DNA from: Dimorphilus gyrociliatus
Taxonomy: Eukaryota > Animalia > Annelida
Reading direction: 5' to 3'
NCBI GenBank assembly: GCA_904063045.1
Contig: CAJFCJ010000025.1
Location: forward strand, 372,001 to 436,000
DNA: 64,000 bases
In this document: positions 5,601-55,900 of the stretch, piece after piece
Position numbering within the stretch: the stretch's first letter is position 1
Layout: each line of letters begins with the position of its first letter
Translations under genes and position numbers: made by a program
The notes under the pieces: model-generated
Seen by the model: the letters and a program-made list of their open reading frames with translations, nothing else
What the model was told of the DNA's origin: nothing
The model's database searches: none

Positions 5601-6791
5601 AATTTGCGTGTTATTCTTAATTGAAATAGCTACCAGATAAAGATTTTATGATAGTTGCTTTGGATCTCCTCTCTGGTTTAGCTGAAGGATTACACATACA
5701 TATTGAGAAATTAGTCGCTAATTCTCATATTCTTAAACTTCTATTTCAATGCATGCAAGATCCAATGCCTGAAGTTAGACAGAGCTCATTCGCTCTACTG
5801 GGTGACCTGACTAAAGCGTGCTTTCAGCACGTGAAACCTTTTATTGGTAAGTTGAAAATTTATTATTCTATTCTAACAAAAGAAAGGTATCTGTCATTAT
5901 ATCTTGTGTGATGAAATTGGAACTCTCTCTTGCTGAATCCTTTAAGGAAGACGTTTATTCCACTGATCAAAAGAATTTAATTTGTCTATTTTATTTGTAA
6001 TCGTAAATAGCATTTTATCTTCAGTTGTTTTCTTTCAGGGAATTTTATGCCAATTCTTGGAAGTAACTTAAATCCGGAATATATTTCGGTCTGCAACAAT
6101 GCAACTTGGGCAATAGGAGAGATTTCTATTAAAATGGAAAATGATATTCAACCTTTTGTACCCATTGTTCTCCCTCATCTTGTCCAAATTATTAACAGAC
6201 CGAACACTCCAAAAACACTTTTAGAAAATACAGGTAATATTTAATGCCTACAAGAGTTTAATTGCTAAATGCGCAATATTCTTATAGCAATTACAATTGG
6301 TCGTTTGGGTCTTGTTTGTCCGGAAGAAGTAGCACCATCCTTACAACATTTTATAAGACAATGGTAAATAAAATGCATTGAGAATAAAAAACATTATTAC
6401 TTTTAATTATACGTTAAAGGCAATAATGTTTTTAAAAAATTTACTATTTAATCATTATATATATTTGTATGCTATAAATTAAGAATGTAAACATGTACTT
6501 AATTTCAGGTGCACTTCTCTCCGTAATATTCGAGATAATGACGAGAAAGACTCAGCTTTCCGTGGAATGTGCAACATGATTAATGTCAACGCAGCCGGAA
6601 TTGTTCACGATTTTATCTTCTTTTGCGATGCTGTTGCCAGTTGGACCCATCCCAAGGACGATTTGAAGGAAATGTTTCATAAAATTTTACACGGCTTCAA
6701 AAATCAAGTGGGTGAGGATAATTGGAAAAAGTTTAGCGAACAATTTCCAGCTCCTCTAAGAGAAAGATTGAGTGTAAGTTATAATGTCTGA
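2615..6791 (+). CDS. TNPO1: Transportin-1 (karyopherin-beta2), multi-exon
   Basis: Starts [22 protein letters not shown], continues [15 protein letters not shown]. Acidic H8 loop [31 protein letters not shown], ends [15 protein letters not shown]. All introns traced are GT-AG and keep frame. Confidence 0.97.
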
Positions 6792-25900: not shown

Positions 25901-28900
25901 GCAGCGTGAAATTGCTTATTCCCCCGACTTTGAGCAGCGCATTTTACAGAACCGTCGTTAACCATAATCTCCAAATTTCCAGAACCAGCAAGTGAAGCAT
26001 CTATATCAAATTCAATTGGTCGACCAATTAAGCCGAATGAAGTTAAATTCTTTATAACAATTGAACTAGCGTCAAATGCTTGCATTCTAAAAGGACCATT
26101 ACTAATGGGTCTATTCATAAATAGAATCTCGATAAGATGTTCTCCTAAAAACGACAGCGAAATAGTTTGTTAACATTTTCTGATACCCCAATAGATTAAG
26201 TAAGAAAGAGAAATTAAATCAAATATACAACTTACCAACTTGTTTAGGAAGATACTCAACTTTGTAAACACCGCTGGATTGATTATTGATTTTAGATGGA
26301 ACAGAACTACCGCTTGGCGCTAAAAAGTTCGTTGAGAGAAGAATTTGTTTATTTTTAATTAGTAACAGAAATTTTTTATCATATTTAAAAATCAACAAAA
26401 GCTCATATAATTATGATTTGTCTATAAGCAGAATTAAACTATATATATTATATATATTTAAATAAACAACACCAACCTTAAAAAAGGATAACATTTAGAA
26501 AAAAAAGGCGGGAAATTCGAAAAAAAAAAACAAAAGAATGCTGTGAAAAAAAGTTCAACGGATAGGATTAGAAAATGAATGAAAATCGGATTAGGAACTT
26601 TGGAATAGGTAAATATTTTAGGTATTTCGTGAAGCGCGGGCGTGAAGAAGAATAATAGGATTGTCTTTTCTTTTCCTTTTCTTTTCTTTAAAAAGTAAAT
26701 TTTATGCGAAAACCTTGTGAAAGTTTGACAAGAAAAGGAAAAGATCTACTTTTTATCAGAGGGTTAAAGGTTAATAAACAATATCTCTATACAGTTTACA
26801 AGTGATAGTTAAAAGTTAGAAAAGATGCCTCTAGGACCAATAACGAAAGAGGTTTAAAAAAAGCGCGTCTACTTACAAGTGATGTCAACTTTTAAATCCG
26901 ATAGTTTGGTTCCCGGTGAATCGGCGTAGATGAAGAAATTGGCAACATTACCCAATGCACTCGATTTTAAACCATCACCGCTAACCTCAATCTACAAATT
27001 AGTAATGTTTATGAACCTATATTTTTGTTTTAATGCATGTATATATATTTAATATTAGAAATATGTACCTTGGAAGCGTCTACTATCTCTAGTGTAAAGG
27101 GCGAACCTCTTATAGGCAGATTTGCGAAAAGAGCTTTAATTGAGTAAAGTCCAGATCCATGTGGAGTGAAAGTTGCTTTATATACACCTCTTGATTCCCT
27201 TTCAATTTGTGTTGGAATTGGATTTCCACGATGAGTGACTTCAACCAACAAATTTCCTTCTCCTGCATTTGAGCAGTCTGCTGTGAACGAAAAACTTCTT
27301 CCGGCAACTCCACCTTCCAGTCCGCTTATTACTACTCTATTGACGTCAAAGACTCGAATGCTAAACGGTGAACCTTCGAGATCTTTACCATTGTACAGAA
27401 TAGAAATTAACCAATCACCAATTTCCGTAGGAATAAAATTAGATGTGAAAACTCCATCATACTCCTTAATAGACCCTTCGATAGTTTGACCGGACGGAGC
27501 TTTAGCCAAAACCCTCAAGTCTCCTTTGCCAGCATTGCTTGAATCAATCTGAAACGTTGGTAATTTTTTATGAAAGGTATTATTCACAAAACAACCATCT
27601 TGAAATCGTGTCCTTTCCATTTTTGCAAGACGTATACTAATTCAATATCTACTACGAAAATAACAAGTAAGTACTTATTCTTTCAGTTTGAATTATGACT
27701 ATTGATTACCCACCTACTAATTAATATTCATAAAATATAAAAATTGCCTTTAAAGTCAGTGATGAATTGGTTTTCCTATAAATATCATTTTGACAAACAA
27801 TAATTGAAATGAAGGCAGAATTATGATTAGAATAAGGTAAATACAATATGTAGTTAATTTGAGAATATACCCTTCTATATAGTATACAGTATATATAGTA
27901 TTTATATATTTGAAACTTTATACTATACTATATATATATTTAATAAATTTAATACGCAGAGACTTTTTGTCTAAAAATTCGACAGAAATGAAAAGAAATA
28001 GTTTTTTATAGCTTTAAAATATCGATTTACGAACTTTTATGCCAATTATTAATTTCCATATTTTTTTCATTTATAATTATTCATTACACGTTTAACTGAA
28101 TCATAATAGTTTGTACCTTTTATTGTTTATACTATATTGTTTGTTAAATATTAAATATCTTACCCTAAGTTCGTGTTGTGATCCCAATGCGCAAGTCTTC
28201 TCGCAATATGCTAGTCTTACTCTACTTGGATCGGCAAGAACTGGTACATTTATCGGACAACCTTCCAAAATAAATTTTCCATTTGACACTAACACTGAAT
28301 GATCTCCGCTTACATCTGGAACAAATGAACATTCTCCAATATTATCTTTCCATGTTATATGTCTTGCATAAGATCTAGAATTTGGCGTTACTATTTCGCA
28401 TCTCATTTGACGTTTATCTATACCAGGTTCGGCGGCAACTTCAACTTTAATAGCTTGGCCAACTATACTTCTTTGCGACACATTCAAGATTCGTGCAGAA
28501 CGAGAAGGTATTACTTTAACATCAACTGACTTGGGTGAATCTTCTATTGGAAATCCCTTATGGGAAACAACAACTTCGTGTGGTCCAACTTCTAAAGGTT
28601 CAAAATTACCTCTACAATAACGTCCAGCCCAAACTAATTGAGGTTTTGGATTTGTGTTTGGTCCTCTAATATCGATACGAACATCGGATGAAGAGAATTG
28701 ATCGTCTAGACTTTCTACCTGGAAATTTACAATTTCTCCCAAGTGTTTAACAGCATCAATTTGCTTCACAACAATGGCTTTTTGAGCAGGATATTTCACA
28801 TTAACATATCCTGGTGAATTATTAACGAGAAATCCATCGTGCCTTGCATAAATTTGATGCTGTCCCGGTTCTAGTGGAACAAAGTAACATTCAGCCTGAT

Positions 28901-31900
28901 TATTCTTCCATCTGATGTTAATATCCGGTTTAGTTCCTGTTGGGCTAATAATTTCTGCTTGAACTTTACTTGGATCGACAGATTTGTCTAGGGCTTCTAA
29001 TCTGAAATTTGCCTGTTCACCCACTGACGTATATTCATCTGCTATTAAACTGACTGCCGACGCCGCTCTCATTTTGACCCTAATAAAAACGGGACAACCG
29101 GCTATTGCCTCTCCGTTATTCATAACTTTTAATTGATATTGGCCTGATTCCGTTGGCATAAAAGAGCCCCTACCAAACTTTCCAGTCCAATTAATTGGAG
29201 ACGATACCGGAATAGTAGGGCCAACAATATCAACGCTTACATCATACGTTGGTACTGAATCATCAATTATTTTTACGCTGTACTCAACAGGTAATCCAAG
29301 CTGAATTTCTTTATTATAAGAAACTAGTTGGACGGCGCTGTCCTTTGAAATTTGAGCTTTAACCCAAACTAGTGCTGGACAGCCGCTTATTAATTCTCCA
29401 TCGTTCAAAACCCTAATTTGATGTTGACCGGATTCAGTAGGCGTAAATGTTCCTCTACCTTGATTACCAATCCAATTGACAGCTGCAATGGGTGAGGAGT
29501 TTCCAACAATTTCTACACTTACATCAGAAGCGCGAACAGATTCATCGATTATTTTTAAAGTAAATTCCGAAGGTCGCTTAGTGATTGCATCCTTATTGAA
29601 TGAGGTTAGCTGAACTCCATTAGCTTTACTCACGGCTGAGAGCTTTACTAAAACAGGAGCAGGACAACCTGTTATTACTTCGTTTCCGTTCAGAACTCTG
29701 ATTTGATGTGTTCCCGGTTCAGATGGAACAAATTGTCCCTGTCCATACTTTCCAGTCCAATTTACCATCGCTTTCGGTCTGGTATTTGGGCCAATTATTT
29801 CAACGCGCACATCGGCCGTTGAATTTCCTTCCATTAATCGTAAAGTGAAGTCAACTGGTCTACCGCCGTGAACTTCTCTATTGTATTGCGTTAGCTGAAC
29901 AGCGTTAGCCTTTATAGATGGCCGTGGTAGAGATTCTAGCGAGGCGGTCGATGTTTTTTGTATCATTTCGTGTTTAACAAGTCCATTTGTGTTAACTCCA
30001 CTCTTTCTAACGTTCATAAACCAAGCAATATAGGCCATAACTCCTAAATGATCGACGTCTGGATCGGCCATTTCCTTTGCTGGTATAACAGGCTCAATGC
30101 CTAAAGAGACTCTAGCTTCAGTCATAACTGCTTGTAAATTTGCAACATTATCCTCTCCAAGATCTGGAGGCGACCCGCCGAATCTAACAACGAGAGATCG
30201 AAGTAAGATCCCGTCTATCCAGTCCGACGTAAAATTATTAACGTGTTTCGTTGGCATCTGATTTCGAACCCACTTTAAAGTTTGGTCGTATCCAGCAGAA
30301 TTTGCTTTCATAAAATAAGATAAATAGGTCATTCCAGATAATTCATCAAGATCAACGGAAGCCATATGTTCTGGGGTAAGCACCTTGGGTATGCGGAAGA
30401 GATCGTGAGCCAAATCAAGGGCGGTTTTGCAGTTTTTAATTTTGTCATTCCTAGATAAATGACGCCAATCAGGACTAGCTCCTGGTGAACACCAATCAAT
30501 AAGAGCATGCAGGAAGATACCATCATTCCAATCAGTAGATAAATTGGCTATTCGGCATTCTGGAAGAACTGCATTTAACCATGCAAGCATTAATTTTTTC
30601 GGAGGAGATCTTTTCCCAGTAGTGGGCGTTGTTTTTCCAGTCCAAATTTGATATCGTAAAATTAAATGCCATATTAGGGCTAATATAAGTTTAACATTCC
30701 CATTTACGACATCTTCAGAGCCTAAAAAACAGAAGAGTATTCAATTAGATAAGACACACTCTAGATTGTCCTACTAAACTATCAAATATGACTACTTGTA
30801 TATTATTAGTAAAAAGTTGATATAAATATGATAAAAAACAATTCATATTCATCTTAAAAGAATTTACAATTTATAACAAAATACAACAAAATTTTTACAC
30901 AATATGTTACGTATCCCGTGTTCAATAACGTTTAATAGAACTATACATAAATATATAAATATATGTAGTATATACGTCGTTTATTGGATAAAAAGAAAAA
31001 ACAAAATTTAATGACGCAAAAATAATATAATCTTTTCAATTAAAGCGTAGTTTTTTTTTAATAAAATATGCCTTTTATTACTATTATTATTTAGTAGTAT
31101 TAGTATAGTTCAATAAGCAAGGAATCCTAATGAAAAGCCGCTTAAATTCTCGTGTTACTTTTCTTCTCCCTCGCTTACCCACATATAGGCAAATTGTATT
31201 TAATATACTTTTTGTATATTACCCTACAACACAAGAAAGACTTTATAAAAAAGTATTCAATTCACTTGAACCAAAGTTTTAACAGAGAAACAACAACAAT
31301 AAGGAATCCTATATATTATTCATGGGTTGACTTTTGAATGATCAATTTGATTGAATAGTTTTATCAATAATATTGTTTTTTTTTCATTAGAACTCTCTTG
31401 TATAATTAGTTAGAAAACGAGAGAGAGAGAAAGGGGCGGAGTAATAGGTAAATGGGGAATGCAATAAGAGAGATAAAAAAAATTGATCTGATAATGAAAA
31501 AAAGCTACTTGAAAATCAAAGATGAAAAGATATAAAACGTGAATGATGAAATATTTTAGGGATTATTCAAGGAAAAAAAAAGAAGAGATAGAGCATGAAT
31601 AACAGTATTTTATAACCTTAAGGAATAGTAAGACTATGATAAAAAACTACAAAAAAGAGCGAAACATAAAATAATAAATCCTTTTAATATTTTGACAAGA
31701 CAGAAAAAGGGGCGGGGCTTTTAGGTTACGTAAGATAAGGGTTAAAATCTACAGAATAAGCAATAACTATATGTTATGTATTTATTTAAACTTGTATTAG
31801 TATCAGTAAGAGGTCTATAACTGGTTAAGAAAATTTACATATATGCTAAAAGTGAACAAAGCCTCAGAAAAAGGCGTAAAATTTGTAATAAAACTAGGTT

Positions 31901-32782
31901 TTATGCGCATTTTACACACATTTTTAACAGTATTTCGAATATATATATACATATACTTGTATATACTTTATAAGAGTATTTAGCAATCTCATAGAATCTA
32001 TATAAATGTACTACCAATAGCAATCTTATTCTATTGCTAAATCAATCATTGCGTTGGTTAATACTAAAAACTTCTTTATGGCCCTACCCCTACTTCCTTT
32101 TCTGAAGCAATACCTTTAAATTGTCAACATTTTTGGCTAATTATCAAGTTTAGAGTGTTTCTAAATTTAATAATACACCTAGAAAAATAGTTAAAATAGT
32201 TCAAGAATACTCTATATAAAAACGAATGAAAAGAATTAAGGTATATAGTATTTTTTCCATTAATAGATATTATAAATTGACAGTATTTCTTCTCTCTCCC
32301 TCTATCTTTCCCTTTCAGTCTTTCTATATGCTACTATATACTTCTTACATACTGATAGGTATGCATATATTTATTCTATATTCGTTTTATTACTTCTTTT
32401 TGTCTATGTTACGCTTTACTCCCCTGATTTGCTCTTTCATTCTTGTCGTGACAAAACAACTTTTTTGATTAGATCACTTACCAATATTTACCAATTTTAC
32501 TCCGTCTCTAGTTATAGCACGCAAAGCCAATGTGACATTCTCCAATTTCTGGTGCTGATTATTTGGTCTTTTAACAATTCTACCTATCTTTCCTCTGGTT
32601 AAGAACGAGACTAATTCGCATAGTCTTACTCCATTGCATAAGTCCTTTTCCAGATTTTGAACTAAAAACGATTCATCGGCGCTGTTAATACGCAACTGTT
32701 CATTGACCCAATTAGAAAAGGTCGTTACTTGAATTCTTAACCACGCATCATCAGCTCCATGCCATTTACCATCATTGGCCAT
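19976..32782 (-). CDS. jbug: Jitterbug/FLN-2-type filamin: three calponin-homology domains plus many filamin Ig repeats, 12 exons traced, about 2900 aa
   Basis: WLRIQVTTFSNWVN and NLEKDLCNGVRLCELV (CH1), DWNDGIFLHALIDW (CH2), NFTSDWIDGILL (CH3), repeated GSPF Ig motifs, C-terminal GPGIEHG...GAGAGQLTVRVRGPK. All introns traced are GT-AG. The ATG at 32782 is inferred. Confidence 0.93.
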
Positions 32783-33320
32783 TTCTTGTGGGGCGCGGTT
32801 AGTCGACTGACTCACGTTGACACCGCCTTACTATGGGGATTTCTTAAATCCGTTGTAATTTCCTTCGATAATCAACGTTACAAGTTTTGGAAAGCGTTCA
32901 AAATGATCAAGTTAGCCGTGGAGCGCGTTGTTTATAAACTATAAACAGGCTGCAGGAAACAGTTGGAAGTAAAAAATCGATTGAACTCTATTGATGCGAA
33001 CGGCGCGCTTGAATTGAATCGAGCTGTCTGCTATAGAACACCGAAGCGACATCTTACGATCTTTCGGGCAAAAGGGTAGGGACAGGAAGAAAAAAGAATG
33101 AAAGGTTAATAAGCATATTCAAAAAGTAAGAGTAGAAAAAATGAATTAGACAAATTGAGATGGTTGAATCCATTGAGCAGCTAAATAATACATAACTTAT
33201 TCATAATAACAGGAAATAATACATTTATTCCGGTAAATAAAATGGGTTATTTAACTATTTTCGATATATCTGTAAACTTTTTACGTAGATCATTCATAAA
33301 AACGATCATTCAGGCTTAAC

Positions 33321-33781: not shown

Positions 33782-35946
33782 ATGGCTAATACATCAAAGA
33801 TTGACAATAACTTATTCAAAGTTCCTCTTAGCACTGGATTTAGGAGATTTTTCTATTTCGTCAAACCGGAAGAAAGCTCCTTTGATAGTCCCGAAAATGT
33901 ACCTAGTTATATTAATGAGGTAATTACGAAAAAGAGGAGTTTTATGTAGTTTTCATTAATAATACGATACTTTCTTGTGTTTAATTTATTCAAATTTATT
34001 CCAATCATTAATTATCATTTCTTTCTGTTTTCCTTTATTTCTTGAATAAAAACTACAAAAAGGCTTTACCATTCTTCTTTGTATTGATAATAACCGAAAA
34101 CATCATCAATTGGTACAAAGACAAAAAAATGATGAGACTAAACGATGCTATGTCATCTATATCCGCTGGTATAATAAGTCAACTACCTCTGTAAGTGTAC
34201 CTAATCCTTCATCTTTTTAATCCTTTTAAGTATTTAATTCAAAATTTTCAAGGTTAATTCGTTAGATTGAAACCCCGATTGTATCTTTTTATAGATTAGA
34301 TTTCGTAGAGATTAACATAGAAAAAAAATAAGAGATTTAATTCTCTGTTTTAATCATAAATACTTTGATTAAAGAAGAATATTATGTAATACTGTTTATA
34401 AAAGTCTGTTTTTATTGATGTTTTCTTGATATTTTATCTTTTTGATAGTCTATTTGGAAGGTCGATTGAAGTTGTCGTTTTTTGCTACGTTCACAAACAC
34501 TATAAGATTGCAGAATTGAATTGGAATAGTCCTATTACATGGTGGATCGGCTTTTTGGGTGTTGATTTGGGATACTATTGTTTACATAGGGCTGGACATG
34601 GTTAATTATTCATTTCTAATAAGAACTGTTTGCAGTATTTTATTTTAACGTTTTGCAGAAATTAATCTTTTTTGGGCTGCTCATCAGGTTCATCACAGTT
34701 CTCAAGATTACAATTTATCAACGGCTCTAAGACAATCGATATTTCAAAGGTATTGTTCATGGATGTTCTACGCTCCTTTAGCCTTATTTCTTCCTCCTCA
34801 AGTGTACATGGTCCATGTACAATTTAATCTGTTATATCAATATTGGATACATACTGAGGTAGTTTAAATAGTTCTTGCTTTTATTAAAATACAAATGTAA
34901 GTCTGTGTGTTAGTTAATTGACACTTTGGGCCCACTTGAATGGATTATGAATACGCCAAGCCATCATAGAGTGCATCATGGAAGAAATCCATACTGCATT
35001 GACAAAAACTACGCGGGTACCCTTATTATTTGGGATAGATTGTTTGGAACTTTCCAAGCCGAAGAACGGGAAGTATCTTATGGCCTTGTGCATCCTTTAC
35101 AAACCTGGAATCCTTTTAACGTACAACTATGCCATTTTAAATGGATTTGGTTAAGATTTAATCAGGAAAAAACAATCTTAGATAAATTATCAACCATATT
35201 CAAAGGTCCTGGATGGCATAAGGGAACACCACGTCTCGGTAAACACGAGGAACTACCAGAAGTAAGATAATTCTCCTATGAGGAAAAAATTACTAAACTT
35301 TAATTAAAAATATCCTCATTAAAAGGTAGAATATCCGGTTAAACTTTATGACAATCACCTGCCTTATTGGTACAATATCTACGTGTTTGCACATTTTTTG
35401 ATACTAATTGTGGCTTATACGGAATTGGTTCAATTTAAAACCGTAAACTAGACATATTCCAACAAATTTATCAAAGAGAATTATATTTTTCTTATATATT
35501 TATTACAGATAATGACGTCATACCAAATAACTTTGGCTATATTATTTATTTTATACAGTTTAACGACCTTTGGTGCCCTTAACGATAAAAAGTAATTGAC
35601 CTATATAAATCTAAAAATTAAAAATATATTTAATCTTTTATCGTTCTTTATTATAGAATTTATGGTTGTTATATGGAATCTGTAAGACTTTTAATATTCA
35701 TGGCGTTATATTTCTATTTCGATCCGGAAAAGAAGTTTCCATCAAAACATTATTTCTATAATGTTAGAGTATTTATGTTAAACATTTAATTGAATATAAA
35801 TAATGCTAATTTATTATTGTTTTTAGGGTATTAAAGTTTTCTCAACTTTTAGCTTTTGTTTATTTACTCTAATTGCTAATCGACAATATACAACTGGAAT
35901 AAATTACTGCCATGAAATCACTCAAAAAACCAAGAAATTATTATAA
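33782..35946 (+). CDS. AGMO: Alkylglycerol monooxygenase (fatty-acid hydroxylase family), multi-exon
   Basis: Histidine boxes YYCLHRAGHE, WAAHQVHHSS, QYWIHTE, MNTPSHHRVHHGRNPYCIDKNYAGTLIIWDRLFGTF. Confidence 0.95.
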
Positions 35947-36863: not shown

Positions 36864-39907
<3,044 letters not shown>

Positions 39908-42741: not shown

Positions 42742-45700
42742 TTAATGTGTTTCTATTGGCTCTAATCGTAATCCTGATGGCGGCCGGTCGTTGTTCCCAT
42801 AGAGTTCCATTTCCCTTAGTTGCGATCTTAATTTCGAAATTTCGTTTCTTTGCATATCGATTATTTTATTCTTGTCGGTAACTTCTAGTTCCAATTTGGT
42901 ATTTGGATTGTTGTCGAGGAGCTATATAGAAGGAAATTATTAGACAAACAATTAATTACTATTGTTTATAATTTCTTTACAAACCCTTGCAAGAGTTTCA
43001 GTAGCTTTAGCTTGATTAGTTTTCCTATGTAATCCTAAGGCTGCTTCCAAGTCGTGGACGTGAGAGCGAGCAATCTTCAACTCTTTTCGAAGATCGTTTA
43101 TTTCTTTGATTAGCGAGACATTTTCCTGCATAATTCTAACGTTATCAGCTTTATGAATTTCTGTATCCTTTACGAGTTTCTTCCTCAGGGATGCTACTGA
43201 ACGTTCTAAATGTTCTCTTTGACGGGCATACTCTTTTTGGATGTCAGCGTCAACGCTCGCCTCCGAAGTCTAATGAGTAAAATTTTTTTTTAACTTGTGA
43301 AAAGATAAGAAATAGTTTTAAGACACTTACGATGTCATCCTGTACGTGTTTTTTATATAGAGCTCTGATACTTTCGCCTAATAGCTTTGGATCTTGGATA
43401 TAGCCAACGCAATTATGTAAATCTGTTCTAAATCGTCTAACGACAGCTTCAACATCTCTGACTGTTTGACGTTCCTGATGCTTCTCCTTTTCAGTAGCCT
43501 TTAATTTTTGTTTTAATTCGCTAATGTTTAATTCTAGCTGGGTATTCTGCTTGTGGAATCTTTCCAATTCGCTTTCCATCTCTTGAATCTGTTCCTTTGA
43601 ATTTTTAATTTCCTTTTCGCGGGGTTCAATTTGTTTTTTAAGCTCTCTAATTTTATAATCCAAGACGAATTTAAACTTTTCTAATTCTTGATTTTTCTTT
43701 TTCAAATCGTAAATTCTCTTCTCTTTATCTTGAATAGTATCGTCTCTTTCTTGAATTTCTTTCTTCAGACCTTGGATATCTTTTTCTAATTGATGTATCA
43801 TGTTGTTGAGTTTTTGAATTTCTTGCTGATATTTCTTTATTTCTTCCTTATGATCTTCGATTTCTTTATTTAAGCTGGTAAACTTCTTTCTTAGAATACC
43901 TGTTTCAGCTTTCAACTTCATATTGTTGTCTTTCTCTTCCTTTAAGCGACGTTCATATCTATTTTTAATATCTAGGATCTCTCTATCAGCATCCTCCTCA
44001 ATTTGCCTCTTAGTTTCTTCGTATTCACGTTTTTGTTCTCTCATCTCGTCATTAGCAGTTTCCAACTTCTTGTTCATATCATTCAATTTGGCTTCGTAGA
44101 ATTCGGTCATCTCTTCCAGCTCTCTTTCTTTTTGCTCTTCCAGTTCCTAATTAATAATATTAACATTTAATAAATTAGTCTCCAATGAAAAATAGCTACA
44201 AGTGTAAAATAATCACAAACTTACGTGTAATTGTCTTTCGTAATCTTCCTGCATCTTTTGACTCTTCGTTTGTAATTCTTGATATTTTTCGTATTCGAGC
44301 ATCAACTTTTGATTGTTTGCAGATTCTGACAGAAAAGAATAAACAAATAAATAAATAATTAAATAAGACTTATTTGAATTAGTTATACCTAAATCTTGGA
44401 CTTCTTTACTGTGCCTTTCAATTATGTCGCTAACATCGTCTTCATGCTTTTGTTCTTGTTTCTCTTTCTCAGTTTTTAGAACTTGATTTTTGGTTTTCAG
44501 AGATTCCATTTCCTGAATAAACTTCTCAGTAAGTTCTTTTATCTTCTCGTTATAATTCATATCTTTCAATCTCATCTGATAGTCATTTTCCATCATTAAT
44601 TCGTCTACTCTTGTTTTCAATTCAGCCATATTTGAGTTCTTTTCTTCTAAATCCGACTTTGTTATCAGGATTTCTTCAGCATATCCAATATCTTTATCCG
44701 CTCGTTTTTGAGCTCTACCTTCCCTGTCTTGTATCTTCCATATCATTACGCATGAATCATCCGAGATAGTAATTAACTGCTGATCGTCGTGAGTAACTTT
44801 CATCTTAACAATCTGAGAAGAATGACCGGTGTATTCAATCCATTCTCCAGGTGTCGTCACAGGAAACTTGATAGATCTTAAGGCTCCGTTATGCATGCCG
44901 GTGAAAAGCATTCTACCTGAATGTGACATAGCAACAGATGTGAATGTTGCATTATCTTTGGCATCAATTTCTCTGAGTACTTGACAGTCCGAAATTTCCT
45001 TAAGAGTTTTATCAGACCCTACAGCGTAATATGTCTTCCCTTCTGGACTCAGAGCAACGCCTGTATAGTGATTTGATTTAAGAACACTCTCTCCAGGTCT
45101 CTTTCCTGTGTAAGTTTCCCATTCGTAAACTGCGCCATCAATACCACAAGACACAATTCTACTGTCGTCCTGACTCCAGACAACAGCTTTTACTTTTCCA
45201 TTATGGCCCTTTAGATTTTGTACCGTTTCAAAAGTAGTTGTTGAATAAACTTGTATTATGTTCCCATGGACAGCGGCGAATAAATGACCTCCATTAGAGA
45301 AAGAGCACTGAAAATGTAGATAATGTTTCAGTTTTAAAAGAGACGTCATTCAGTTTGTTTGAACTCAGAATACTTTTCATTTAACAATGGAGGCTATTTG
45401 CTTTTAAAAAGCCGTCTAAAAATCCACCCGCATATAAGGGTATTTTAGCTAAGGGTCAATAGTACTCAAAAGAAGACTAGACTGTTGTTTACTCTTACTA
45501 TTATTATTCCTATGATTAATTAACCAAAAACATACTAATTTACCAAATTTAATTAAAGTGTTAAATCGAAAATCCTATCTGTCAATATTTTATTTTAAAA
45601 GAACTTTATATAATTTAATCGAATAAATGCTTCTTACCTCTCGACATCCTCTAATTGTAAATTCTTTAAATGGGCGGATATCATCAATAAGAAGATTCAT

Positions 45701-48700
45701 CAGTCTCAGCTTATCGCTAAAACCAACAAGAATGTAGAGTCCACTAGGATGCAGAGCAATTGAATAAGCTTCTTCCGGAAATTCCTTATATAATTCTATA
45801 TTATTTGTTTCGAAATTCCAAACCCTTATAGAGTGATCGAGGGAACAAGTGGCTATTAGCGGTTTTCTTATGCAAACATCCAAACCAGTCACTTGACCGT
45901 GATGGAAAGACTGCGCAAGGAATTCGAACTTGCCATATTCCCCTTTACCCAATTCAGTTGACGAAAGAGCAATGGAAAAACTCTGACCTTGATCCGTAAT
46001 ACAAACTAAACTTTCCTCTGATGGACTTATTGCCAAGGCTGTTATTGTTTGCGCTGCGTTTTTAGCTGGATCGATTGTATTTTGATCTTCCGGAATCTGT
46101 TTTCAAAATGTATTTAATTACCTAAGATTTATCTAACCTTGTCTCATTCATCATTTTGCTATTAATTACTCTTTAAATACAACTATTCCTCTCTTTCGTT
46201 TCTTATTTATAGTCTCACTTTTCAATAAATATATATTCATTAAGATAAAATTAGAATTCTTAGAACACTTTATGAAAGAAAGACTTAACAAGGTGACGCT
46301 AGATGCCTTTGATGTAATCTCTGTAAGACTAATGGATTACAACCTTTTAATGGATTTTACAGATTATTATAAAATACTTTTAAAAATAGATGGCGCTGTG
46401 TGTATTTTCCTTGGAATAGGCTTTCTTGTACTCTTACTATCCTCCAACAAATAGCACAAAGCATCGCCTCTTTAAAGTAGTTTAAGAAGGAATTTAAACA
46501 TGATTTTCACAAGGCTAATTGAATATTCAAAGTCTAAATAGATGTATTTAATATAGTTTAATAGGGCTATAAAATAAATGATTGAAAAAACTACGTCTAT
46601 TCAAGAGCAGTTAATTTGGAAATAGCAATGCTTATAAAATATTCTCAAAAGTGATAAAATTTACCTAAATTTATTTTATGACTAAAATAATGGCTTTCAT
46701 TTACATTAACGCATCATAATAGACCATTTGGAGATTTCAATACAAAATAAATTATCCGTATAAATGGTATTATACGTGTTTTATGATTGAGAAAAGAACC
46801 ATTTGAAATCTTGATATTATTCTCATGTGAAAATATACATATGTATATATATATAACATAATTAACTGAGCTAATAAATTTCTTCTGTTTGCGCAAAGAA
46901 ACTTACCCTAACTTCTCTGGTTTTTTTGAAAACTTCTTTTTCTTCGCTCTTTTCAAAGATAAACACTCTTCCAGGGCCCACTGTACAGGCAAAACCTTTT
47001 GAAAAGGCGGCGATAGCTGTAACATTCACGGACGCATCGAAAGATTGTTCATCCGAAATTGTCGTCATTGTTTTCTCTCTTTCCAAATCGCTCTTTTCTC
47101 TGTCTAACTTGATTAGATCAGCAAGATTAATTTCACTTTTAACTTCTCCAGCTTCAAAAATTAGTAGCCTGATGTAAAAAGAAATAAATAGTTTTTTATT
47201 TAATATAAAAAAGGGGGCTATTAATTATTACAGACTTTCCGCTGTCCGTTCCAACTACTACTCTTTCATCCGAAACCCAGGCTTGGCATAAATAATTTTG
47301 TTCCGCTTTTTGAAAAGCGAACTGTTTCAAGGTCGTTTCACTATACCTAAATAGTTTAAAGATTGCATTGCCAGTCGCGCATATTTGCGTATTATCTTGT
47401 GGATTAAACGTCACTTGGTAGACAGGCAATGATCCCCTTGGATCCGAAGTCTTGGTAGATGCCATTACTCGTGACTTTTCCCAAGTCCAATACAAAAGAG
47501 TCCAATCCGGCTTACCTCCCTGCGTAATTAAGTACTTTGAATCTGGTGAGAAGGAAACGCTAACAAATTCTGAGCTCTGAACTTCGGGTGACGTTAGAAC
47601 TTTCCTTTTTCTTAAAGAGTGTAGATCGTAAATTGTAACGGTCGCTTTTCCAGCGTGCCTTTCAGCCAAGGCTATATATCGCCTATTTGGAGAAACTGCC
47701 ATGGCTGTAAGAGCTTCAACTTTATCGGAGCCTGGAAGATAAATAGGATTTTCTGTAATTATCGTAGCAATGAAATCATGATATAATTGATAAAGAGAAA
47801 GATCTATTTTTAGATATTTTCATCTCTGTAAGAGGTCAGCCCCGATGATTTTATTATAGGAATTAGGGCATAATTATTCACAATTGGGTTGACCACCTGT
47901 AATTTAAAACTCTTCCACTTGAAAATCTCATTCTCCTTTTCATTTAATGATTCATAACATTATAAATAAATTCCCTTATTCTTTTGATAAAATTCCAACT
48001 AAACGCTTACTCTACCCACCTCCCAATTTAATAGCCTAAGATGGATAGCGCTGTTTCCCTAGCAACAGACAACGTATGTTTCTTAGTTTAACGCGTAGCT
48101 TTAGATCTTTTTCTAATTAAAACTTAACGAAACATATTTATCAACATCTTAAGTTACAATCAAAATAAATTGTTATGTCTTAAACAAAAAGAAAAAAAAA
48201 AGATGAGAATGTAAAGAAACAATAAATAAAACAAAGAAAAGAGGGAATTGAACCAAATTTGACAGCTTGTAATATTGTTAAAATGTCGAATTGTCAGTAA
48301 ATTTGTTTTTTAAAACAAAAAAGGATATAGGTTAAAAAAAGTTTGCAAGATTTATTTGGTTAAGACAGAGTATTTTGTACTTCAATGTCACATAACAAGA
48401 AAAAAAACCTATTTGGTTTCTTTCATACAATAGAATAATGCTATTAAGAAATTATTTGTTCTCCAAGGCTAATAATCTTTCCTATCTTTATCTCTTTAGC
48501 TCTCTCTCTCTCTCGCTCGCTCTCTGTGGATTTTTACAATTTGGTGGTCTACTTACTTTTGATGGAGATAAACAGAGTATCGAATCACTTATTTTTACAA
48601 TACAACCTTTTAAAACCTTGTACATATATCAATGTAATTGTTTAGGTTATTAACTTATTGTCTTTGCCTTGTTTTTCCTAAATTACCTTACATCTTAATT

Positions 48701-49904: not shown

Positions 49905-52900
49905 ATGAACGTCGGTCAAGATAAGGAGCTTAACGATCTTCTGGATTTCAGTGCGGTTAGTATTCTGAGTATTTAGCAGTCATGTGAACAAAAAAAAATA
50001 AGATAGTAAGTAACAAGAGAAAAACAACATAGTTAACCAAAGAACGAGCTGTTTGAGAAATCTAAAAGACGGTGAGAAATCGAGAGGTCAAGTTATGGTT
50101 ATCATAAAATACAAATTAGTATTGTTGCATTAATTTATGTTAATGTTATTCAAAACGCCTGAGAAATTTAGTATTAATAGGAAACATTTGAAATGTTTAA
50201 CAAATTAAAGTTCCTATTCGAGAAGTTTTTGACTTATTAAAGTTTGGCCAAGAAAAAAAAGAATAGAATGTTTACTCTAACAATTTATTATTATAAACTA
50301 TGATAAATGAAGTTTTTAAAGTAATAAACTATAATTATTCATCCTTATATAGTAATTTTTTTTTTTAATTTATTGAATATACATAACACTTAGAATAATT
50401 CAAGATGCTCTATTTTTTTAAAACACACCATTATATCCTTCATTATACATTATTCAAAGACTTGAACAAATTTTACACTGACTAACATATTAGGGCAATT
50501 AGTTAAGATGTAAAAGTTAACAGATGAAATTCTAACGATAAGTTAACAGATTAATGTAAATTACATCAACAAACGATCAATTTACATCTGTTTATGGATA
50601 TTTTACATTCGAATGACATTACATTTTTTTTAAATACTACAACTATTTATTTTCTTTTATTCTTATTAGCAGTATAAAAGTATTAAAATATCTTTTAATG
50701 AATTTATTTTTAGGTCAAAGGTTAATTCTTAGATAAATAGAATTTATTTTTTTCCTTTTGGATAAAAAGATGAAATAATAGAATTATGTGTAGTGTGAGG
50801 GGAAATCAACAGGGAGGTTGTAAGTGTCTTTTACCGTTTCGCTTTTATTGATGCCATTCTTGGCTTGTTATACAATATATTTTAGTAGTATTTAATAACT
50901 TAACCGCAACGTAAAATACCAATGTTAACAGCAATAAAATGAAATAAACAATAAAGTCAAAAAATTCATAGCCAATTGTTAAGGTTATAGGTTAATACTT
51001 GCTATGTCTGCCACACAATTTATAATAGTAGTCGTAACGGCTTGAAAGACGTCTTTTACGCTTTAATCAATCGTTTAAGGTGAAAACATTGAAGGATTTC
51101 TGTCTCGTCTCTTTCTCACTGTCTATCGTTCATCTTAAGATGTCTGAGTAAGACGTTTGCAATGTGTATAAAAAACGATTCGGCAGTTATTAACGGTCCG
51201 GTTAGGGGATGACCGCTGGTCAAGAAACCAGGGTTAGGTTATAGGTTAATGTATACTACATCTGGCCGTGAAGAAAATGTAATTTTAATCGAATTTCAGA
51301 TGTTCTCACCACCCGTTCGATCTTCAAACAGTAACGTCGAAACGACGTCCTACAGACACGGTTAGTGAAAATTTTTTTATACCATTCTTGAGATTCGTAA
51401 AAGAATGTGTGTGTATATATATAAATATATAAAAAAGATAGATATTATCAATAAACTTAGAATAAAACGGAAAGAGAGGTGATAATAATATAAAGTATAA
51501 AAGTTGAGCAAAAAAAAAATGCGATAAAAGATAAGGAAATGGGAACAGAAATAAAGTGAACTTATACTCTTGTTTTATTCGAGGCGGAAAGAAGTAAAAA
51601 TTGAGCCCTGTGATTAGTAGTAAGTCGAGGCGGAAAGAGTAATGATATTTACCGCAACAGTCACTTCTTAGCTGCCCAATTGATCTTACCGCCCGGTAAA
51701 ACGTTGCTATGGTGACGGATATCTATCAAAAGGCGTTTCTTACGGGCGTCTAAGAGGCGATTATGCAATATTTACTGGGGCGTCTACTTTTCTATTTTTC
51801 GAGGCTTCTTACATAAGCTACGCTGCTGGCGTTTTTTCAGGAAGCGGGTAAGATATAATAGAGGTGGAGATAGGGAAGGGGGTAAATGGAAAAACGAACG
51901 TTAGTTCGTATGTTTTTTGAAAGAATTACTTTAAACGACTGGTGATCTCTTATTGCTTAGTTAAGTGTGTTTTGGGGATTTTATATATTTTTTATACTGT
52001 CTACAATCGGACTATTTGTATATTGTTACTCGTAAAAGTAGGAAGAGGAAAGTATCTCGGAGGAAATAAAATAGCCTTTTCTTCTATTTTACTTTTTCCT
52101 TTTTCTTACAAAGATTTTTTTGGGGAAAAAGCGAAAATTGATTTTTTCCTTCTTAACTTTTTTTTATTCGACTATCCCATTCTTGGCAACAGGAGTACCA
52201 AGTGCGGTTCTATTATAGATCTATCTTTAACGGATTTGTTTACTGAATGACTTTTGTACCTTGTGAAAAAATCTTTCACGTCCTCGTCTTCCAAGCTCTC
52301 AATCTCTGTGTATCTCTCTTTTTCTGCCTTTTCTTCGAACAATAAACTCTGTACCTTTAGCAAGATCAATTTGGGAAATTAATTACGCGTCTTGTCATTT
52401 CCATGTGTTATTGTAGTTATAGCATACTTTTTTATGTTATTGAATAAAGAAGAGAGTATATAGCATTAATTGCTAACCTTATCAAATAATAGTTATCAGA
52501 ATAGCTTATTTTAGGACTACTCGCTCATTTTTTATTTAAAAATTACGTAGTTTTCTTAAAAGATGTTGTTGAATTTTTATATAAAAGCATTAACTACATA
52601 GTTAAGTTTTTTATTATTATTTATGAGAATAGTGAAAGGTTAACTTATTAGAATTCATTGTGTGTTTTTGCGCGCGCATTTTATGTAAATTTGTAGCTAA
52701 TTACTCGTAACTAAAGAACACTACGTAGGAATATTCTTTAGGGAGGTTTGAAAAAAGAGTAGGATTGTAAATCATGTATAAATAGGTAAAAAAAAACTTT
52801 ACCCATCCGTCTACTAAATCGTGTAATAACCGACCGCAACCTACGTAAGGTTATCTAGAGAAAATGTATCGTTGCGGAACATTCGTACCGCCAATTGAAA

Positions 52901-55900
52901 ACAGACGGAGATGTGCTTCCGCGAAAAATCTGTTTTTCCTGCTCGACTCAGCTGATCTTCCAGGCGCAGGTGGAAGGCATTAGACAGCTGCATCGGTAGC
53001 TGGAAGCAGGTGGTGTGCAGCGATTCGCCAGAAACAGGTGCCTAAATTCTCGCAACATTTGCAATGGGATGACGCAGCTGTTTCTGTTGAGCAGCTGGAT
53101 AACAGATGGGTCGTCAGGGTCAATAAACCCGATATGAAAAGCGTTGAAGAAATTCTTTCGATATCTTGCCTCTGTTTTGGAATTTTTAAGCTATCGTTGC
53201 CCTCAAGCGTGGTATCTATGAATGCTCAACTATGTCTTCTCTCTCGATAATAATGATTTTTTATCAATCCGTTCGTCTCTCTTAACTAGGATAACAAGGA
53301 ACTCGTTAGGCACAAGATTTTTTAAATGAAGTATTAATTTATGTACTTTTGTTTTCTTAACGAAATTTAAACTCTGTTGTCTTCAAATCGGGTTTGCTTA
53401 TCTTAATTAATTCTTTCCACATGTTAGAAACGGCTATTCCTTTTCAATTATGGATGAATTTGTTATATTTTATTTTACAATCTTAGCCTCGACTCCTCCG
53501 CCTCCGTAACAATCAATCAAACTTATTTGAACAATTTCTTATATCAATTATAGACACATGGCAGTATAGATTGCCGGTTAGGGAATGGATAGTCTTAAAC
53601 AAAGTTTATTGAACATGAGTGGGGAAGCTAAAGTTTTTTACATGTCCATTGATGATGAACTTAAAATAGAGGTATATGTAAAATTTGCCTGATAAAACTA
53701 TTTCACAGAAAGTTTTCTTTCAAAACATTTCTGCCAGCTAGCTGATAACAGGTGGATGTTATCAGCCGCCAAAGATAGCGCCTTATCGGGCTTAAGTTTG
53801 CAGTAAGCGTGACGGCGAGTCGGTAAACAACGTAAACAAAGACTCGACCGACTTATTGTTTGTCACGTTCCATCGTTTGTTCGTACAATCCTCAACTGAA
53901 AGACAATGCTTAAAGCAATGTATAAATGCCAGTAAAAGGGAGTAGAGATCGTTTTTGCGCGTTGTGGGAAGACGACAGATTGTTACTTGATTAGACACTC
54001 ATTCTCTATTTTAACAATTAAACGAGCTATGTAAACGTTCAATCAATTTTTTTTTTAATTTTATTTTCTACGTCACCTTGATTGGAGATAGAAAACAATT
54101 GTTGATTCTTGTCCTTTGAACTGAAAAAATATAAAAAGTAATATGGCACTATTTCCCTTTATACCAACAAGAAGTCTCTATATTCAACAATTAACAAAGC
54201 TTTGCTAGGGATTAATGAATTTTTCTTAATAATTGATTTTTAGTGGCTGGGGAAAGAAGTGCTGCTTGTCTTTGTTACAAAAATTGATTGTTCTTTTGTG
54301 CTGCACGGTAGAGCGCGTGTTCAAAATTGGGAATAATTTGAAGAAACGTTCGTAAATAATTCAAGATGTCGCAGCTGATTGAACCCTTGAGGTTTGCAGG
54401 AATAGTAGCGAATCACGGAAACTTGTAAATGGGAGTCTTTCATCCTTCCGGTTCTAAATGTTGACCCTATATAGTTCAATTTACTAAACAAGGTCGCTTA
54501 GTTCAAATCATTTTATTCAATAGATATAAACAAAAACCCATTAACAATAGGATATATAATTTTTAAATTTTTTCAGGCTTTATTCCGCAGTTGTTTTTTC
54601 CGATTAGTCCCTTTTCAATTGTTAAATAATGACGTTTAGATTATATCAACTTAAATAACTCATTATATTCATTCGATAAGAAATAGGGGAATATGGGATT
54701 CTACAATAGGTTTTGAATAAAAATAGGCCTTTATGTTGTCGGATGATTCTCAATACGGATTTCGTTACAATTTTCGATTAAAATTTGACTTTTTAATGTT
54801 CTTTTATGGCATTTTCTAAAGTCGCTTTTTAATTGGTTGATTCTCTTTAACTCTATTTTTAAACTTACTCTAGAGCAGAGGATTAATTCTCCTAATATTT
54901 GACACTTTCGCCCTTTAACCTGTATTATTCGTTTTAGCCGAGGCTCTGACCCTAATCCATAGCTGTATAACCCCTTCTTTTTAGATGAAAATATTGAAAA
55001 AAGTATTTTTTCCATTATGCTCTATGCGGTTGTTTATATAATGGCTAATTCCTCGCAAAGATATTTTTTAAATAACTATTGTTTGCCAAAGGCAATTTAA
55101 ATGTCGGTAGATGGAGTTTGAGTGGATATCACGAGCAAGAGTTGTGACGAATCAATCACATAAAAATATATATGATGGGAGATTTTAATATCACTAGATG
55201 GAGTTAGAAGAAGTAATAAATTGAGAAAGAGATTGAAGGAGAGAGAGAGATAGATAGAGAGAATAGTCAAGTATTCAAGCAAGTGTTAAGATTATAAATC
55301 TAAAAATGATTGAGACCATTCAGATAAAGCATGATTGCCTGGTTTTGATGTAAGTTCCCACCGCCCCAATCGTTTTCATTAAGGCGTCGGAAATGTAAAG
55401 CAGTCTGCAGTTGACAGCCCGACGTGAAGAAAAGGAAGGAAGAGCCGCTAATGGAGCGTAATAGAAAATGCGTAGGAGACGAGACGATTTTTTTTATTAA
55501 ATGAGTTTATAAGGAAAAACAATTAAAAAAATTAATAGGTTATGTTCCTTCAATGAACAATAAGCCATTTTTTATAGATAAATTTAATAACTGATATCAA
55601 GGTTATTTAAGAGAGTTTTTAACTATTCAACTAAGTCAATAAGAAAATCATATTAGTGTGAAAAGGGCGGCGAATTTCAACTTGGTTTATTTGATAAAAT
55701 AAATTTGATTTCCTTCTTTTTTTTGATCTATTTATTAACTGTTTATGGCTATGTCGTAGTATTCGTACGTTAAGAAAAAGTAACTTTGTTTAAAAAGACG
55801 AGTAATGGCGAAACAATTATGGGAAGCGAAGTGAAGTTGAGAGAAGATTAAATGGAATGCGGATGTTGTCCAGGTAAAACTTCTCACCATATCTCGGTTA

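Follow-up and report, generated by a model that had tools for sequence, protein, structure and literature searches.

The window, a 64-kb stretch of DNA from Dimorphilus gyrociliatus, a tiny marine worm, contains part of an E-protein gene of the daughterless/TCF4 type (models DgyrCDS13434-38), which extends over ~36 kb and possesses several alternative first exons. Nearly every tissue-specific bHLH factor depends on an E-protein as its obligate partner. The basic region of the bHLH is intact (RRQANNQRERLRVRDIN; RRQANNQRERLRVRDINEAFKELG), and its one deviating position varies in molluscs too. Our search recovered a single E-protein locus in the worm genome, which gave 77 HLH matches; possible partner genes are two of ASC type (L061 and L063; C29:375570 and C7:1621330) and one of MyoD type (L062; C5:1148317). 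Within the E-protein locus, on the strand of the gene, a GC-raised island packed with E-boxes sits between two recognisable exons. The main features are as follows, where extended coordinates run on beyond the window.

49906-49956, plus strand: coding exon, unannotated, that carries the AD1/PCET motif (MNVGQDKELNDLLDFSA), with an acceptor upstream and then a GT donor
51301-51361, plus strand: unannotated coding exon (MFSPPV) MFSPPVRSSNSNVETTSYRH; the large intron containing the island begins at 51362
52860-53130 (C25:424860-425130), unstranded: GC-raised island with the entire E-box cluster, ~0.50 GC in a 0.32 GC background, single-copy in the genome
73108-73254 (extended coordinates): next recognisable exon of the E-protein gene
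83675-83893 (extended coordinates): bHLH exon of the E-protein gene

The island is located 1.6 kb 3' of the two unannotated AD1 exons and ~20 kb 5' of the next recognisable exon, and the alternative first exons lie further downstream. The deposited models begin only at 75773 or 77936, 23-25 kb from the island, and have no AD1. The earlier note had placed the cluster in the E-protein gene's own intron. The AD1/PCET and MFSPPV exons are indeed found upstream, on the plus strand and with proper splice signals; however, as the AD1 exons are absent from the deposited models, the term intron depends on an inferred long isoform, the exons being treated here singly and not as a joined model. The D. 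gyrociliatus genome is compact with typically very short introns, and its large introns tend to contain ATAC peaks (PMC7854359); ATAC-seq reads of the species exist under PRJEB37657 and in later data sets.

A sequence recount of 52949-53108 revealed nine CANNTG within 160 bp, seven of which are CAGSTG, and recovered every motif previously reported there, including the near-misses, at its coordinates. The GC content is likewise raised, at 0.52 over these 160 bp and ~0.50 over 52860-53130, compared to ~0.32 for the window. The three CAGGTG boxes, at 52967, 53007 and 53035, share the plus orientation, with the flanks GCAGGTGG, GCAGGTGG and ACAGGTGC, respectively. The first three boxes are spaced at 18 and 18 bp, and a weak 31-nt inverted repeat, 71% complementary, pairs 53011-53041 with 53074-53104. 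The individual sites are listed below.

52892-52897, unstranded: additional CANNTG (CAATTG), the tenth, in the island but beyond the coordinates given earlier
52949-52954, unstranded: E-box 1, CAGCTG (tCAGCTGa)
52961 (start): near-miss CAGGCG
52967-52972, plus strand: E-box 2, CAGGTG; GCAGGTGG matches GCAGSTGK
52985-52990, unstranded: E-box 3, CAGCTG; minus-strand GCAGCTGT matches GCAGSTGK
52997 (start): near-miss TAGCTG
53007-53012, plus strand: E-box 4, CAGGTG; GCAGGTGG matches GCAGSTGK
53035-53040, plus strand: E-box 5, CAGGTG; ACAGGTGC, the sole Snail/Scratch-type ACAGGTG flank
53056-53061, unstranded: E-box 6, CATTTG/CAAATG, of a weaker class
53075-53080, unstranded: E-box 7, CAGCTG; GCAGCTGT matches GCAGSTGK
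53092-53097, unstranded: E-box 8, CAGCTG; GCAGCTGG matches GCAGSTGK
53103-53108, unstranded: E-box 9, CAGATG, an Atonal/NeuroD-preferred core
53739-53754, plus strand: outlying pair TAGCTGataaCAGGTG, 630 bp downstream and similar to 52997-53012

In total, the 64-kb window contains 28 CAGSTG, and its background of ~0.05-0.07 per 160 bp agrees with the rough expectation of well under 0.1 stated before. In 5000 dinucleotide-preserving shuffles of the island, CAGSTG reached a mean of 0.30-0.41 and a maximum of 3-4 compared to the seven observed, and CANNTG a mean of 1.6-1.8 and a maximum of 7 compared to 9-10. The densest 160 bp held at most three CAGSTG in all 200 block-wise shuffles of the 64-kb window. 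The clustering of CAGCTG and CAGGTG in the island is far above chance even at the local composition. Both are high-affinity Achaete/Scute sites (PMC2529316), and an extended consensus, GCAGSTGK, has been applied to Mash1 (PMC2330019). The quality of the boxes is borne out by this consensus, which is matched by five of the seven CAGSTG in the island versus 5 of 34 outside, in 90 kb (Fisher p = 0.0055). Of the GCAGSTGK sites in the 64-kb window, seven in number, the island alone holds five. Su(H), Hes, Sox, POU and Hox motifs were all absent from the island in a motif scan, which makes the cluster purely homotypic.

Genome-wide search for CASSTG triplets at 4-30 bp spacing returned 62 places in 78 Mb. 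Outside repeats, the island is the one spot in this genome where three overlapping CAGSTG triplets of the same orientation form a chain. Minisatellites aside, only three loci contain several CASSTG triplets, namely the genes of the E-protein, an Id/Emc-type HLH protein and an MTG/ETO/nervy-type co-repressor, each with several dense non-repeat class-A E-box clusters; this three-locus result is post hoc, as the loci were picked for inspection after the hit list was seen, and covers ~60 of the 62 places. The E-protein gene has the island and a second triplet group at G000:C25:436901, and the second and third E-box groups lie deeper inside the same gene. The Id-type gene (L010 9425-9946; C20:269425-269946) encodes an HLH without a basic region and has E-box clusters on its flanks. 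The MTG/ETO gene (C7:3689616-3691731), with TAFH, NHR2 and MYND domains, has 11 CAGSTG in ~860 bp immediately 5' of the TAFH exon. The density of CAGSTG is 2.21 per kb at the Id locus and 1.56 per kb at the MTG locus, compared to 0.33 per kb for the remainder of the window. The AD1/PCET motif is bound by the TAFH domain of ETO (PMC3874172), and the E-protein, Id and MTG/ETO genes together form an E-protein feedback network.

Similar clusters in orthologous introns had been named as a check on the enhancer. In Mytilus galloprovincialis, the corresponding intron (L007 15725-30624) lacks one, and E-box groups occur elsewhere in the Mytilus, Ridgeia and scallop genes. The Mytilus E-protein gene has a significant cluster of four in 135 bp (P<0.005) outside that intron, the Ridgeia gene likewise has a significant one of four in 76 bp (P about 0.035) not at the position of the island, and one E-box group among the three genes is a minisatellite. 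The nearest bHLH relative found is a 985-bp transcript contig, 89% identical and apparently spliced. With the neighbouring CFAP57 as an anchor, the best relative was that of Capitella (73% identity), with no E-protein exon within 10 kb. The scallop gene model has no AD1, and the E-protein genes of Lymnaea and Liolophura exceed 100 kb.

The missing Mytilus counterpart, the 18, 18 bp spacing of the first three boxes and the weak inverted repeat would all fit a functionless island, a GC-rich patch made by chance or mutation, such as a decayed short repeat, that is rich in CAGSTG. However, TRF reports no tandem repeat in the island even at score 30, no shuffle attains the observed E-box count, and the flanks of the boxes match the extended consensus. 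Moreover, apart from the E-protein gene, only the Id and MTG genes hold more than one such cluster in 78 Mb, a choice that chance would hardly make, and a compact genome of short introns has retained this very large one (PMC7854359). We consider a functionless patch unlikely.

The three CAGGTG in one orientation, one of them with an ACAGGTG flank, could also be read as a repressor landing pad, where Snail/Scratch/ZEB factors or Hes-recruited complexes would be the main binders of CAGGTG/CACCTG and shut off the E-protein gene, which is compatible with the island being a bHLH-responsive enhancer. CAGGTG is bound by Snail-family and ZEB factors; however, CAGCTG, not a preferred site of Snail/ZEB, makes up four of the seven strong boxes, and no Hes sites were found in the island by the motif scan. 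GCAGGTGG, present at two of the three CAGGTG, matches GCAGSTGK and is the classical E2A-type site. In an E2-box silencer of the Snail/Scratch/ZEB kind, CAGGTG/CACCTG cores with flanks preferred by zinc fingers should dominate, whereas the island has CAGGTG in three of seven boxes and ACAGGTG in one. A predominant repressor pad is quite unlikely, and the competition by Snail/Scratch/ZEB that the earlier note had added, with its flank in just one of three CAGGTG sites, is speculation.

Sequence searches support a non-coding and non-repetitive island. It matches only itself in the 78-Mb genome and gave nothing meaningful in repeat searches, which speaks against a repeat or transposon fragment, and an ncRNA was rejected for lack of an Rfam match at E <= 1. 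Neither is it a recognisable coding exon, having no Pfam family, protein homologue or similarity to spiralian E-proteins. The plus-strand ORF at 52984-53247, of 88 codons, scores like genuine exons in codon usage and comes second among 121 non-coding ORFs; this ambiguous score is largely an effect of GC, and no protein among 5.8 billion has three 5-residue words in common with the ORF. One frame (LPRKICFSCSTQL) resembles a ZAD zinc finger at the level of noise (zf-AD, 14.4 bits versus a cut-off of 28, E = 0.045), ZAD being an arthropod domain.

The ORF score nevertheless bears on a transcribed island, either an unannotated exon or an alternative promoter together with its first exon, belonging to the E-protein gene or to some other transcript. 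It would agree with TATAAATA, which precedes the island by 80 bp (52777-52784), with a pyrimidine tract followed by AG at 52930-52951, with the donor-like CAG/GTG and with the alternative first exons further downstream. With only poor potential donors (GTGGAA, GTGGTG and GTGCCT) and protein comparisons that gave nothing above noise, we regard transcription of the island as very unlikely. A true enhancer that serves a different gene, for example CFAP57, which is transcribed divergently (first large exon ending at 47819) and has its 5' end just ~5 kb away, is highly improbable, since the island lies past the AD1 exons inside the E-protein gene, further E-box groups lie deeper in that gene, and CFAP57 belongs to the ciliary structural genes, a type driven by RFX/FoxJ1 and not by E-boxes.

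The sequence shows a rare cluster of motifs placed within the gene, in DNA that is neither repeat nor coding, and a genome that has partner, Id and MTG genes. We propose, with a probability of roughly 0.55, that the island is a homotypic bHLH-responsive enhancer (cis-regulatory module) of the E-protein gene that would give E-protein feedback. The seven high-affinity class-A E-boxes (CAGCTG/CAGGTG) in 160 bp would be bound cooperatively by E-protein-containing dimers, either E-protein homodimers or heterodimers with Achaete-scute, MyoD or other class II partners. Because the dimers on the boxes would contain the E-protein, its activity would feed back onto its own transcription. The loop would be restrained by Id/Emc, which would titrate the E-protein, and by MTG/ETO, which would bind its AD1 motif; the genes of both restraining products likewise carry dense E-box clusters. 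We infer factor binding, an activating effect, the target promoter and the cell types. With its seven top-affinity motifs for its own protein family, the gene probably feeds back on itself, as in flies and mammals. For the autoregulatory enhancer suggested in the earlier note, the location (given the long isoform), the E-box quality and the non-repeat, non-exon nature held up, and autoregulation itself appears more plausible, because dense E-boxes recur genome-wide at Id and MTG/ETO, and because of the fly and mammalian precedent.

More tentatively, the E-protein, its inhibitor Id and the AD1-binding MTG/ETO could form a self-contained circuit hard-wired in cis, their three genes having the densest class-A E-box clusters outside repeats in this compacted genome. 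The circuit would be an ancient bilaterian module, and no other single element of the genome would respond to the E-protein as strongly as the island; we hold this to be possible, though doubtful. If true, a positive arm (the island) and two negative arms would have been laid bare by genome compaction.

E-protein dosage is critical, as seen in the TCF4 haploinsufficiency of Pitt-Hopkins syndrome and in the fly da/emc balance. To our knowledge, cis evidence for E-protein feedback is scarce beyond flies and vertebrates. The candidate element, which is short, has sharp boundaries and occurs once in the 78 Mb of this spiralian, would supply a very clean, synthetic-looking response element, and the motif signature shared with the Id and MTG/ETO genes points to a compact E/Id/ETO wiring diagram in a third major animal branch. 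As E-protein autoregulation is already known for daughterless and TCF3, the worm candidate would extend the concept without changing it.

According to the works that cite these studies, Drosophila da regulates its own gene within limits set by Emc (Smith & Cronmiller 2001; Bhattacharya & Baker 2011, cited in PMC7406316, PMC5915177 and PMC3485281), and mammalian TCF3 autoregulates under negative feedback from ID3 (cited in PMC5915177). Similar to daughterless/Emc, the worm would have an E-protein gene with cis elements for its own product and an E-protein-dependent Id-type HLH that restrains the loop, and its E-protein and Id genes both have dense class-A E-box clusters. By contrast, the fly loop is described in those works as proven by genetics and reporters, whereas the worm loop is known from sequence alone; the worm element is also unusually dense and purely homotypic, and sits 3' of the AD1 exons in a gene of 36 kb that can begin with any of several alternative first exons. 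Mammalian E-proteins share the positive feedback on their own gene countered by Id, which is predicted for the worm, but comprise three vertebrate paralogues with cross-regulation, compared to the single worm locus recovered. The fly neural-precursor enhancers of nervy, deadpan and nerfin-1 (PMC2529316) also have several CAGCTG/CAGGTG within a few hundred bp; that of nervy is E-box-rich, and its worm orthologue MTG/ETO has clustered CAGSTG as well. These fly enhancers average ~4 E-boxes accompanied by other conserved motifs, whereas the island has no other scanned motif and carries seven strong boxes in 160 bp.

The E-box cluster at 52949-53108 contains exactly the motifs that the earlier note had listed, namely four CAGCTG, three CAGGTG, one CATTTG, one CAGATG and two near-misses; an extra CAATTG lies upstream.

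E-boxes and near-misses of the island (start positions)
52949, 52985, 53075, 53092: CAGCTG
52967, 53007, 53035: CAGGTG, all on the + strand
53056: CATTTG
53103: CAGATG
52961: near-miss CAGGCG
52997: near-miss TAGCTG
52892: extra CAATTG

The cluster sits in a GC-raised island, as had also been described. This island (~52860-53130) has sharp borders and a GC content of ~0.50, compared to 0.32 for the window. The 64-kb window possesses 28 CAGSTG (CAGCTG or CAGGTG), one quarter of which fall inside the cluster. Dinucleotide-preserving shuffles of the island, which retain its surplus of CA, AG, CT and TG, gave a mean of 0.30-0.41 CAGSTG with a maximum of 4 in 5000 trials, and a mean of 1.6-1.8 CANNTG with a maximum of 7, compared to 9-10 observed. 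Moreover, the densest 160 bp held at most three CAGSTG in every one of 200 block-wise shuffles of the whole window. The E-box density is far from chance, and a reading of the island as a neutral patch appears unlikely.

The island boxes also share an extended context. Five of the seven island CAGSTG fit GCAGSTGK, the extended consensus used for Mash1/Achaete-scute sites (PMC2330019), compared to 5 of 34 in the remainder of the 90 kb under study (Fisher p = 0.0055). The window has seven GCAGSTGK sites, and five of them fall inside the island. Two island boxes read GCAGGTGG, the classical E2A-type site. Both CAGCTG and CAGGTG are high-affinity Achaete/Scute sites (PMC2529316). Scanning of 52800-53200 found no consensus sites for Su(H), Hes class B/C, N-box, Sox, octamer, Meis/Pbx, Smad, T-box or homeodomain factors, so the module is purely homotypic. 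A landing pad for zinc-finger repressors, which would be compatible with an enhancer, is assigned a low probability.

A repeat or transposon copy was rejected, as 52800-53200 matches itself alone in the 77.9-Mb assembly (BLAST, even at E <= 10). Tandem Repeats Finder found no tandem repeats in the island at a score of 30, and a search for internal repeats returned only short pairs attributable to chance and a weak inverted repeat of 31 nt. Four open frames of 66-88 codons run through the island, none of which matched a Pfam family above noise (the sole match was zf-AD, whose 14 bits fall below the cut-off of 28). The longest ORF found no protein with at least three common 5-residue words among 5.8 billion, thirteen spiralian E-proteins gave nothing but a chance-level match (tblastn, E = 23), and no Rfam family matched the island at E <= 1. 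On the other side, codon usage in the + strand ORF 52984-53247 scores 0.18 log-odds per codon, inside the range of real exons, and places this ORF second among the 121 stop-free ones of the locus that lie in non-coding sequence. As this score tracks GC content closely, we read it as a weak hint of a transcribed exon or promoter that falls short of evidence, and consider such an identity of the island quite improbable. A perfect TATAAATA lies at 52777-52784, ~80 bp upstream of the island, and would be relevant should the island prove a promoter or first exon; TATAAATA is frequent in AT-rich DNA.

The gene around the island was identified by its bHLH exon, which lies beyond the downstream end of the window (L003:9675-9893, in the downstream part of the E-protein gene) and is 100% identical to DgyrCDS13434-13438 of Dimorphilus gyrociliatus; the window corresponds to C25:372001-436000. 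These deposited isoforms of 396-463 aa all lack AD1; they start at two alternative first coding exons, like the short "Alt" isoforms of vertebrate E-proteins, and the remaining ones at an internal Met. The same strand carries two further exons, which are unannotated and start 26 kb before the deposited models.

E-protein exons, analysed singly (extended, window numbering run on past 64000)
49906-49956, +: unannotated AD1/PCET exon encoding MNVGQDKELNDLLDFSA, AG acceptor, GT donor
51301-51361, +: unannotated exon encoding MFSPPVRSSNSNVETTSYRH, AG acceptor, GT donor
extended 73108-73254: next homology-recognisable exon, "...RQRRKSGSV" nuclear-localisation stretch
extended 75773-75856 (L003:1773-1856): alternative first coding exon of deposited isoforms
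extended 77936-77986 (L003:3936-3986): alternative first coding exon of deposited isoforms, MFYYPARQ...

The first of these fits the PCET/AD1 consensus GTDKELSDLLDFS (PMC3874172), with 83% identity to the Mytilus and Lymnaea exons. The island thus appears to lie 1.6 kb inside a very large intron of a putative AD1-containing long isoform; the annotated starts follow 23-25 kb downstream. The earlier placement in the gene's own intron holds provided that this isoform exists, which homology and splice signals support. This genome is compact, its introns are typically very short, and its large introns tend to hold ATAC peaks (PMC7854359); that one of roughly 20 kb was retained here thus already hints at regulatory content. 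The gene harbors two lesser groups: four CAGSTG plus CAGATG, CAGTTG and CATCTG in 175 bp (extended 64901-65076, L002:901-1076, from C25:436901), and five CAGSTG in 273 bp (extended 77858-78131, L003:3858-4131) around the alternative first exon 77936-77986. The adjacent AD2-like exons NPIEDRLDDAFETLRDH (L003:7610-7669, extended 81610-81669) and SRFEERLDDAIHVLRSH (L003:8043-8252, extended 82043-82252) are used jointly or alternatively in the deposited isoforms.

Other genes of the window (ORF translation, by eye)
2809-6788, +: transportin/importin-beta type
19979-32827, -: filamin, very large
34649-35267, +: alkylglycerol-monooxygenase-like fatty-acid hydroxylase
37019-38959, -: VCP/p97
42745-47819, -: CFAP57, confirmed by search

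That the island is an enhancer serving a neighbouring gene is very improbable.

Genome-wide searches placed the island among few comparable loci. The pattern CAGSTG-N(4-30)-CAGSTG-N(4-30)-CAGSTG was matched 37 times across 78 Mb, mostly by minisatellites, and the island accounts for three overlapping matches. CASSTG triplets in either orientation occur at 62 places, 50 of which were listed, and about 10 of the other 12 are identifiable from the CAGSTG-pattern list. Minisatellites aside, only three loci among the matches listed have several triplets: the E-protein gene (the island and C25:436901-436945), an MTG/ETO-type gene and an Id-type gene. These hold the densest non-minisatellite E-box clusters of the genome among those matches; the loci inspected were picked after the hit list was known. 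CAGSTG per kb is 0.33 in the first 48 kb of the window, which are rich in genes, 0.64 in the E-protein gene, 1.56 in the MTG locus and 2.21 in the Id locus (over 14 kb).

Five triplet matches at C7:3690404-3693150 fall inside or immediately 5' to a gene on the minus strand, which we assign to the MTG/ETO/nervy-type co-repressors because its exons (L008 6616-8731, -) carry TAFH/NHR1, NHR2 and zf-MYND (Pfam). It has four E-boxes within 39 bp of a short intron (L008:7405-7443) and 11 CAGSTG in ~860 bp directly 5' to the TAFH exon (L008:9495 to L009:351; region to C7:3693350). These clusters parallel the validated neural-precursor enhancer of Drosophila nervy, with six conserved E-boxes (PMC2529316). 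Three further matches at C20:266167-266808 lie beside a small HLH gene (L010:9425-9946), and a stretch of 730 bp on its other side (L011:161-894) contains a further nine CAGSTG; dense CAGSTG/CACGTG clusters thus flank it on both sides (L010:6168-7092, L011:161-894; C20:266167-270894). Its domain covers Pfam HLH positions 15-53 only, without a basic region, and it has "...VSKVQLLQHVIDYIFDLE"; by sequence it is of Id/Emc type. Its clusters are a candidate E-protein-to-Id negative-feedback arm.

Altogether, we propose, with a probability of about 0.55, that the island is a homotypic bHLH-responsive enhancer through which E-protein-containing dimers would act on their own gene, as one arm of an E-protein/Id/ETO feedback network; its activating rather than repressing action, target promoter and tissue are what we infer. 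Id titrates E-proteins. The TAFH domain of the ETO family binds the AD1/PCET motif (PMC3874172), which is encoded 3 kb upstream of the island. The worm E-protein, recovered as a single locus by genome searches, retains the E-box-contacting basic region RRQANNQRERLRVRDIN, with one deviating position that is variable in molluscs too, and 77 HLH matches in the genome include two ASC-type genes and one MyoD-type gene. E-protein autoregulation is already known from flies and mammals: Drosophila da autoregulates, Da is needed for Emc and Emc restrains da autoregulation, and in B cells ID3 exerts negative feedback on TCF3 autoregulation (PMC5915177, PMC7406316, PMC3485281). The network-level pattern across three genes is the more interesting part of the result.

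Only E-protein genes were compared in other species, and E-box groups recur in those of spiralians at no fixed position. The "...VYPPAPSPEDY" exon of the Mytilus gene is preceded, at 1.7 kb, by four CAGGTG in 135 bp (L007 59638-59772; block shuffles, P<0.005). The orthologous intron in Mytilus galloprovincialis (L007 15725-30624) contains ten CAGSTG, which are scattered and form no cluster. The tubeworm Ridgeia has four intronic CAGCTG within 76 bp (L024 19620-19695; P about 0.035), and eight CACCTG at the annotated 5' end of the scallop gene (L006:5251-5466) form a 28-bp-period minisatellite. None of these three groups lies in the intron orthologous to that of the island. In Capitella, CFAP57-anchored synteny fails, with no E-protein exon inside 10 kb, and the closest bHLH relative in a large protein search was an 89%-identical 985-bp contig, apparently spliced and probably a transcript.

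Eleven single-hit CASSTG loci were also inspected; one triplet falls within a WW-domain coding exon, and the loci other than this and the following three have no informative neighbour. At C21:433671-433731 (L022:4972-5032, L044), the triplet sits at the extreme 5' end of a complete bHLH ORF that looks ATOH8/net-like (RRVEANARERSRVHTISAAFETLR...), with 8 CAGSTG in the surrounding 3.1 kb. Another triplet (L021:4943-5008) lies on the 3' side of a GCM-domain gene (L021:482-1910), about 3 kb away, and a third (L017:4968-5030) ~1.9 kb from a BEN-domain gene (L017:6893-7921); in other animals, both gene types are linked to neural or glial fate.
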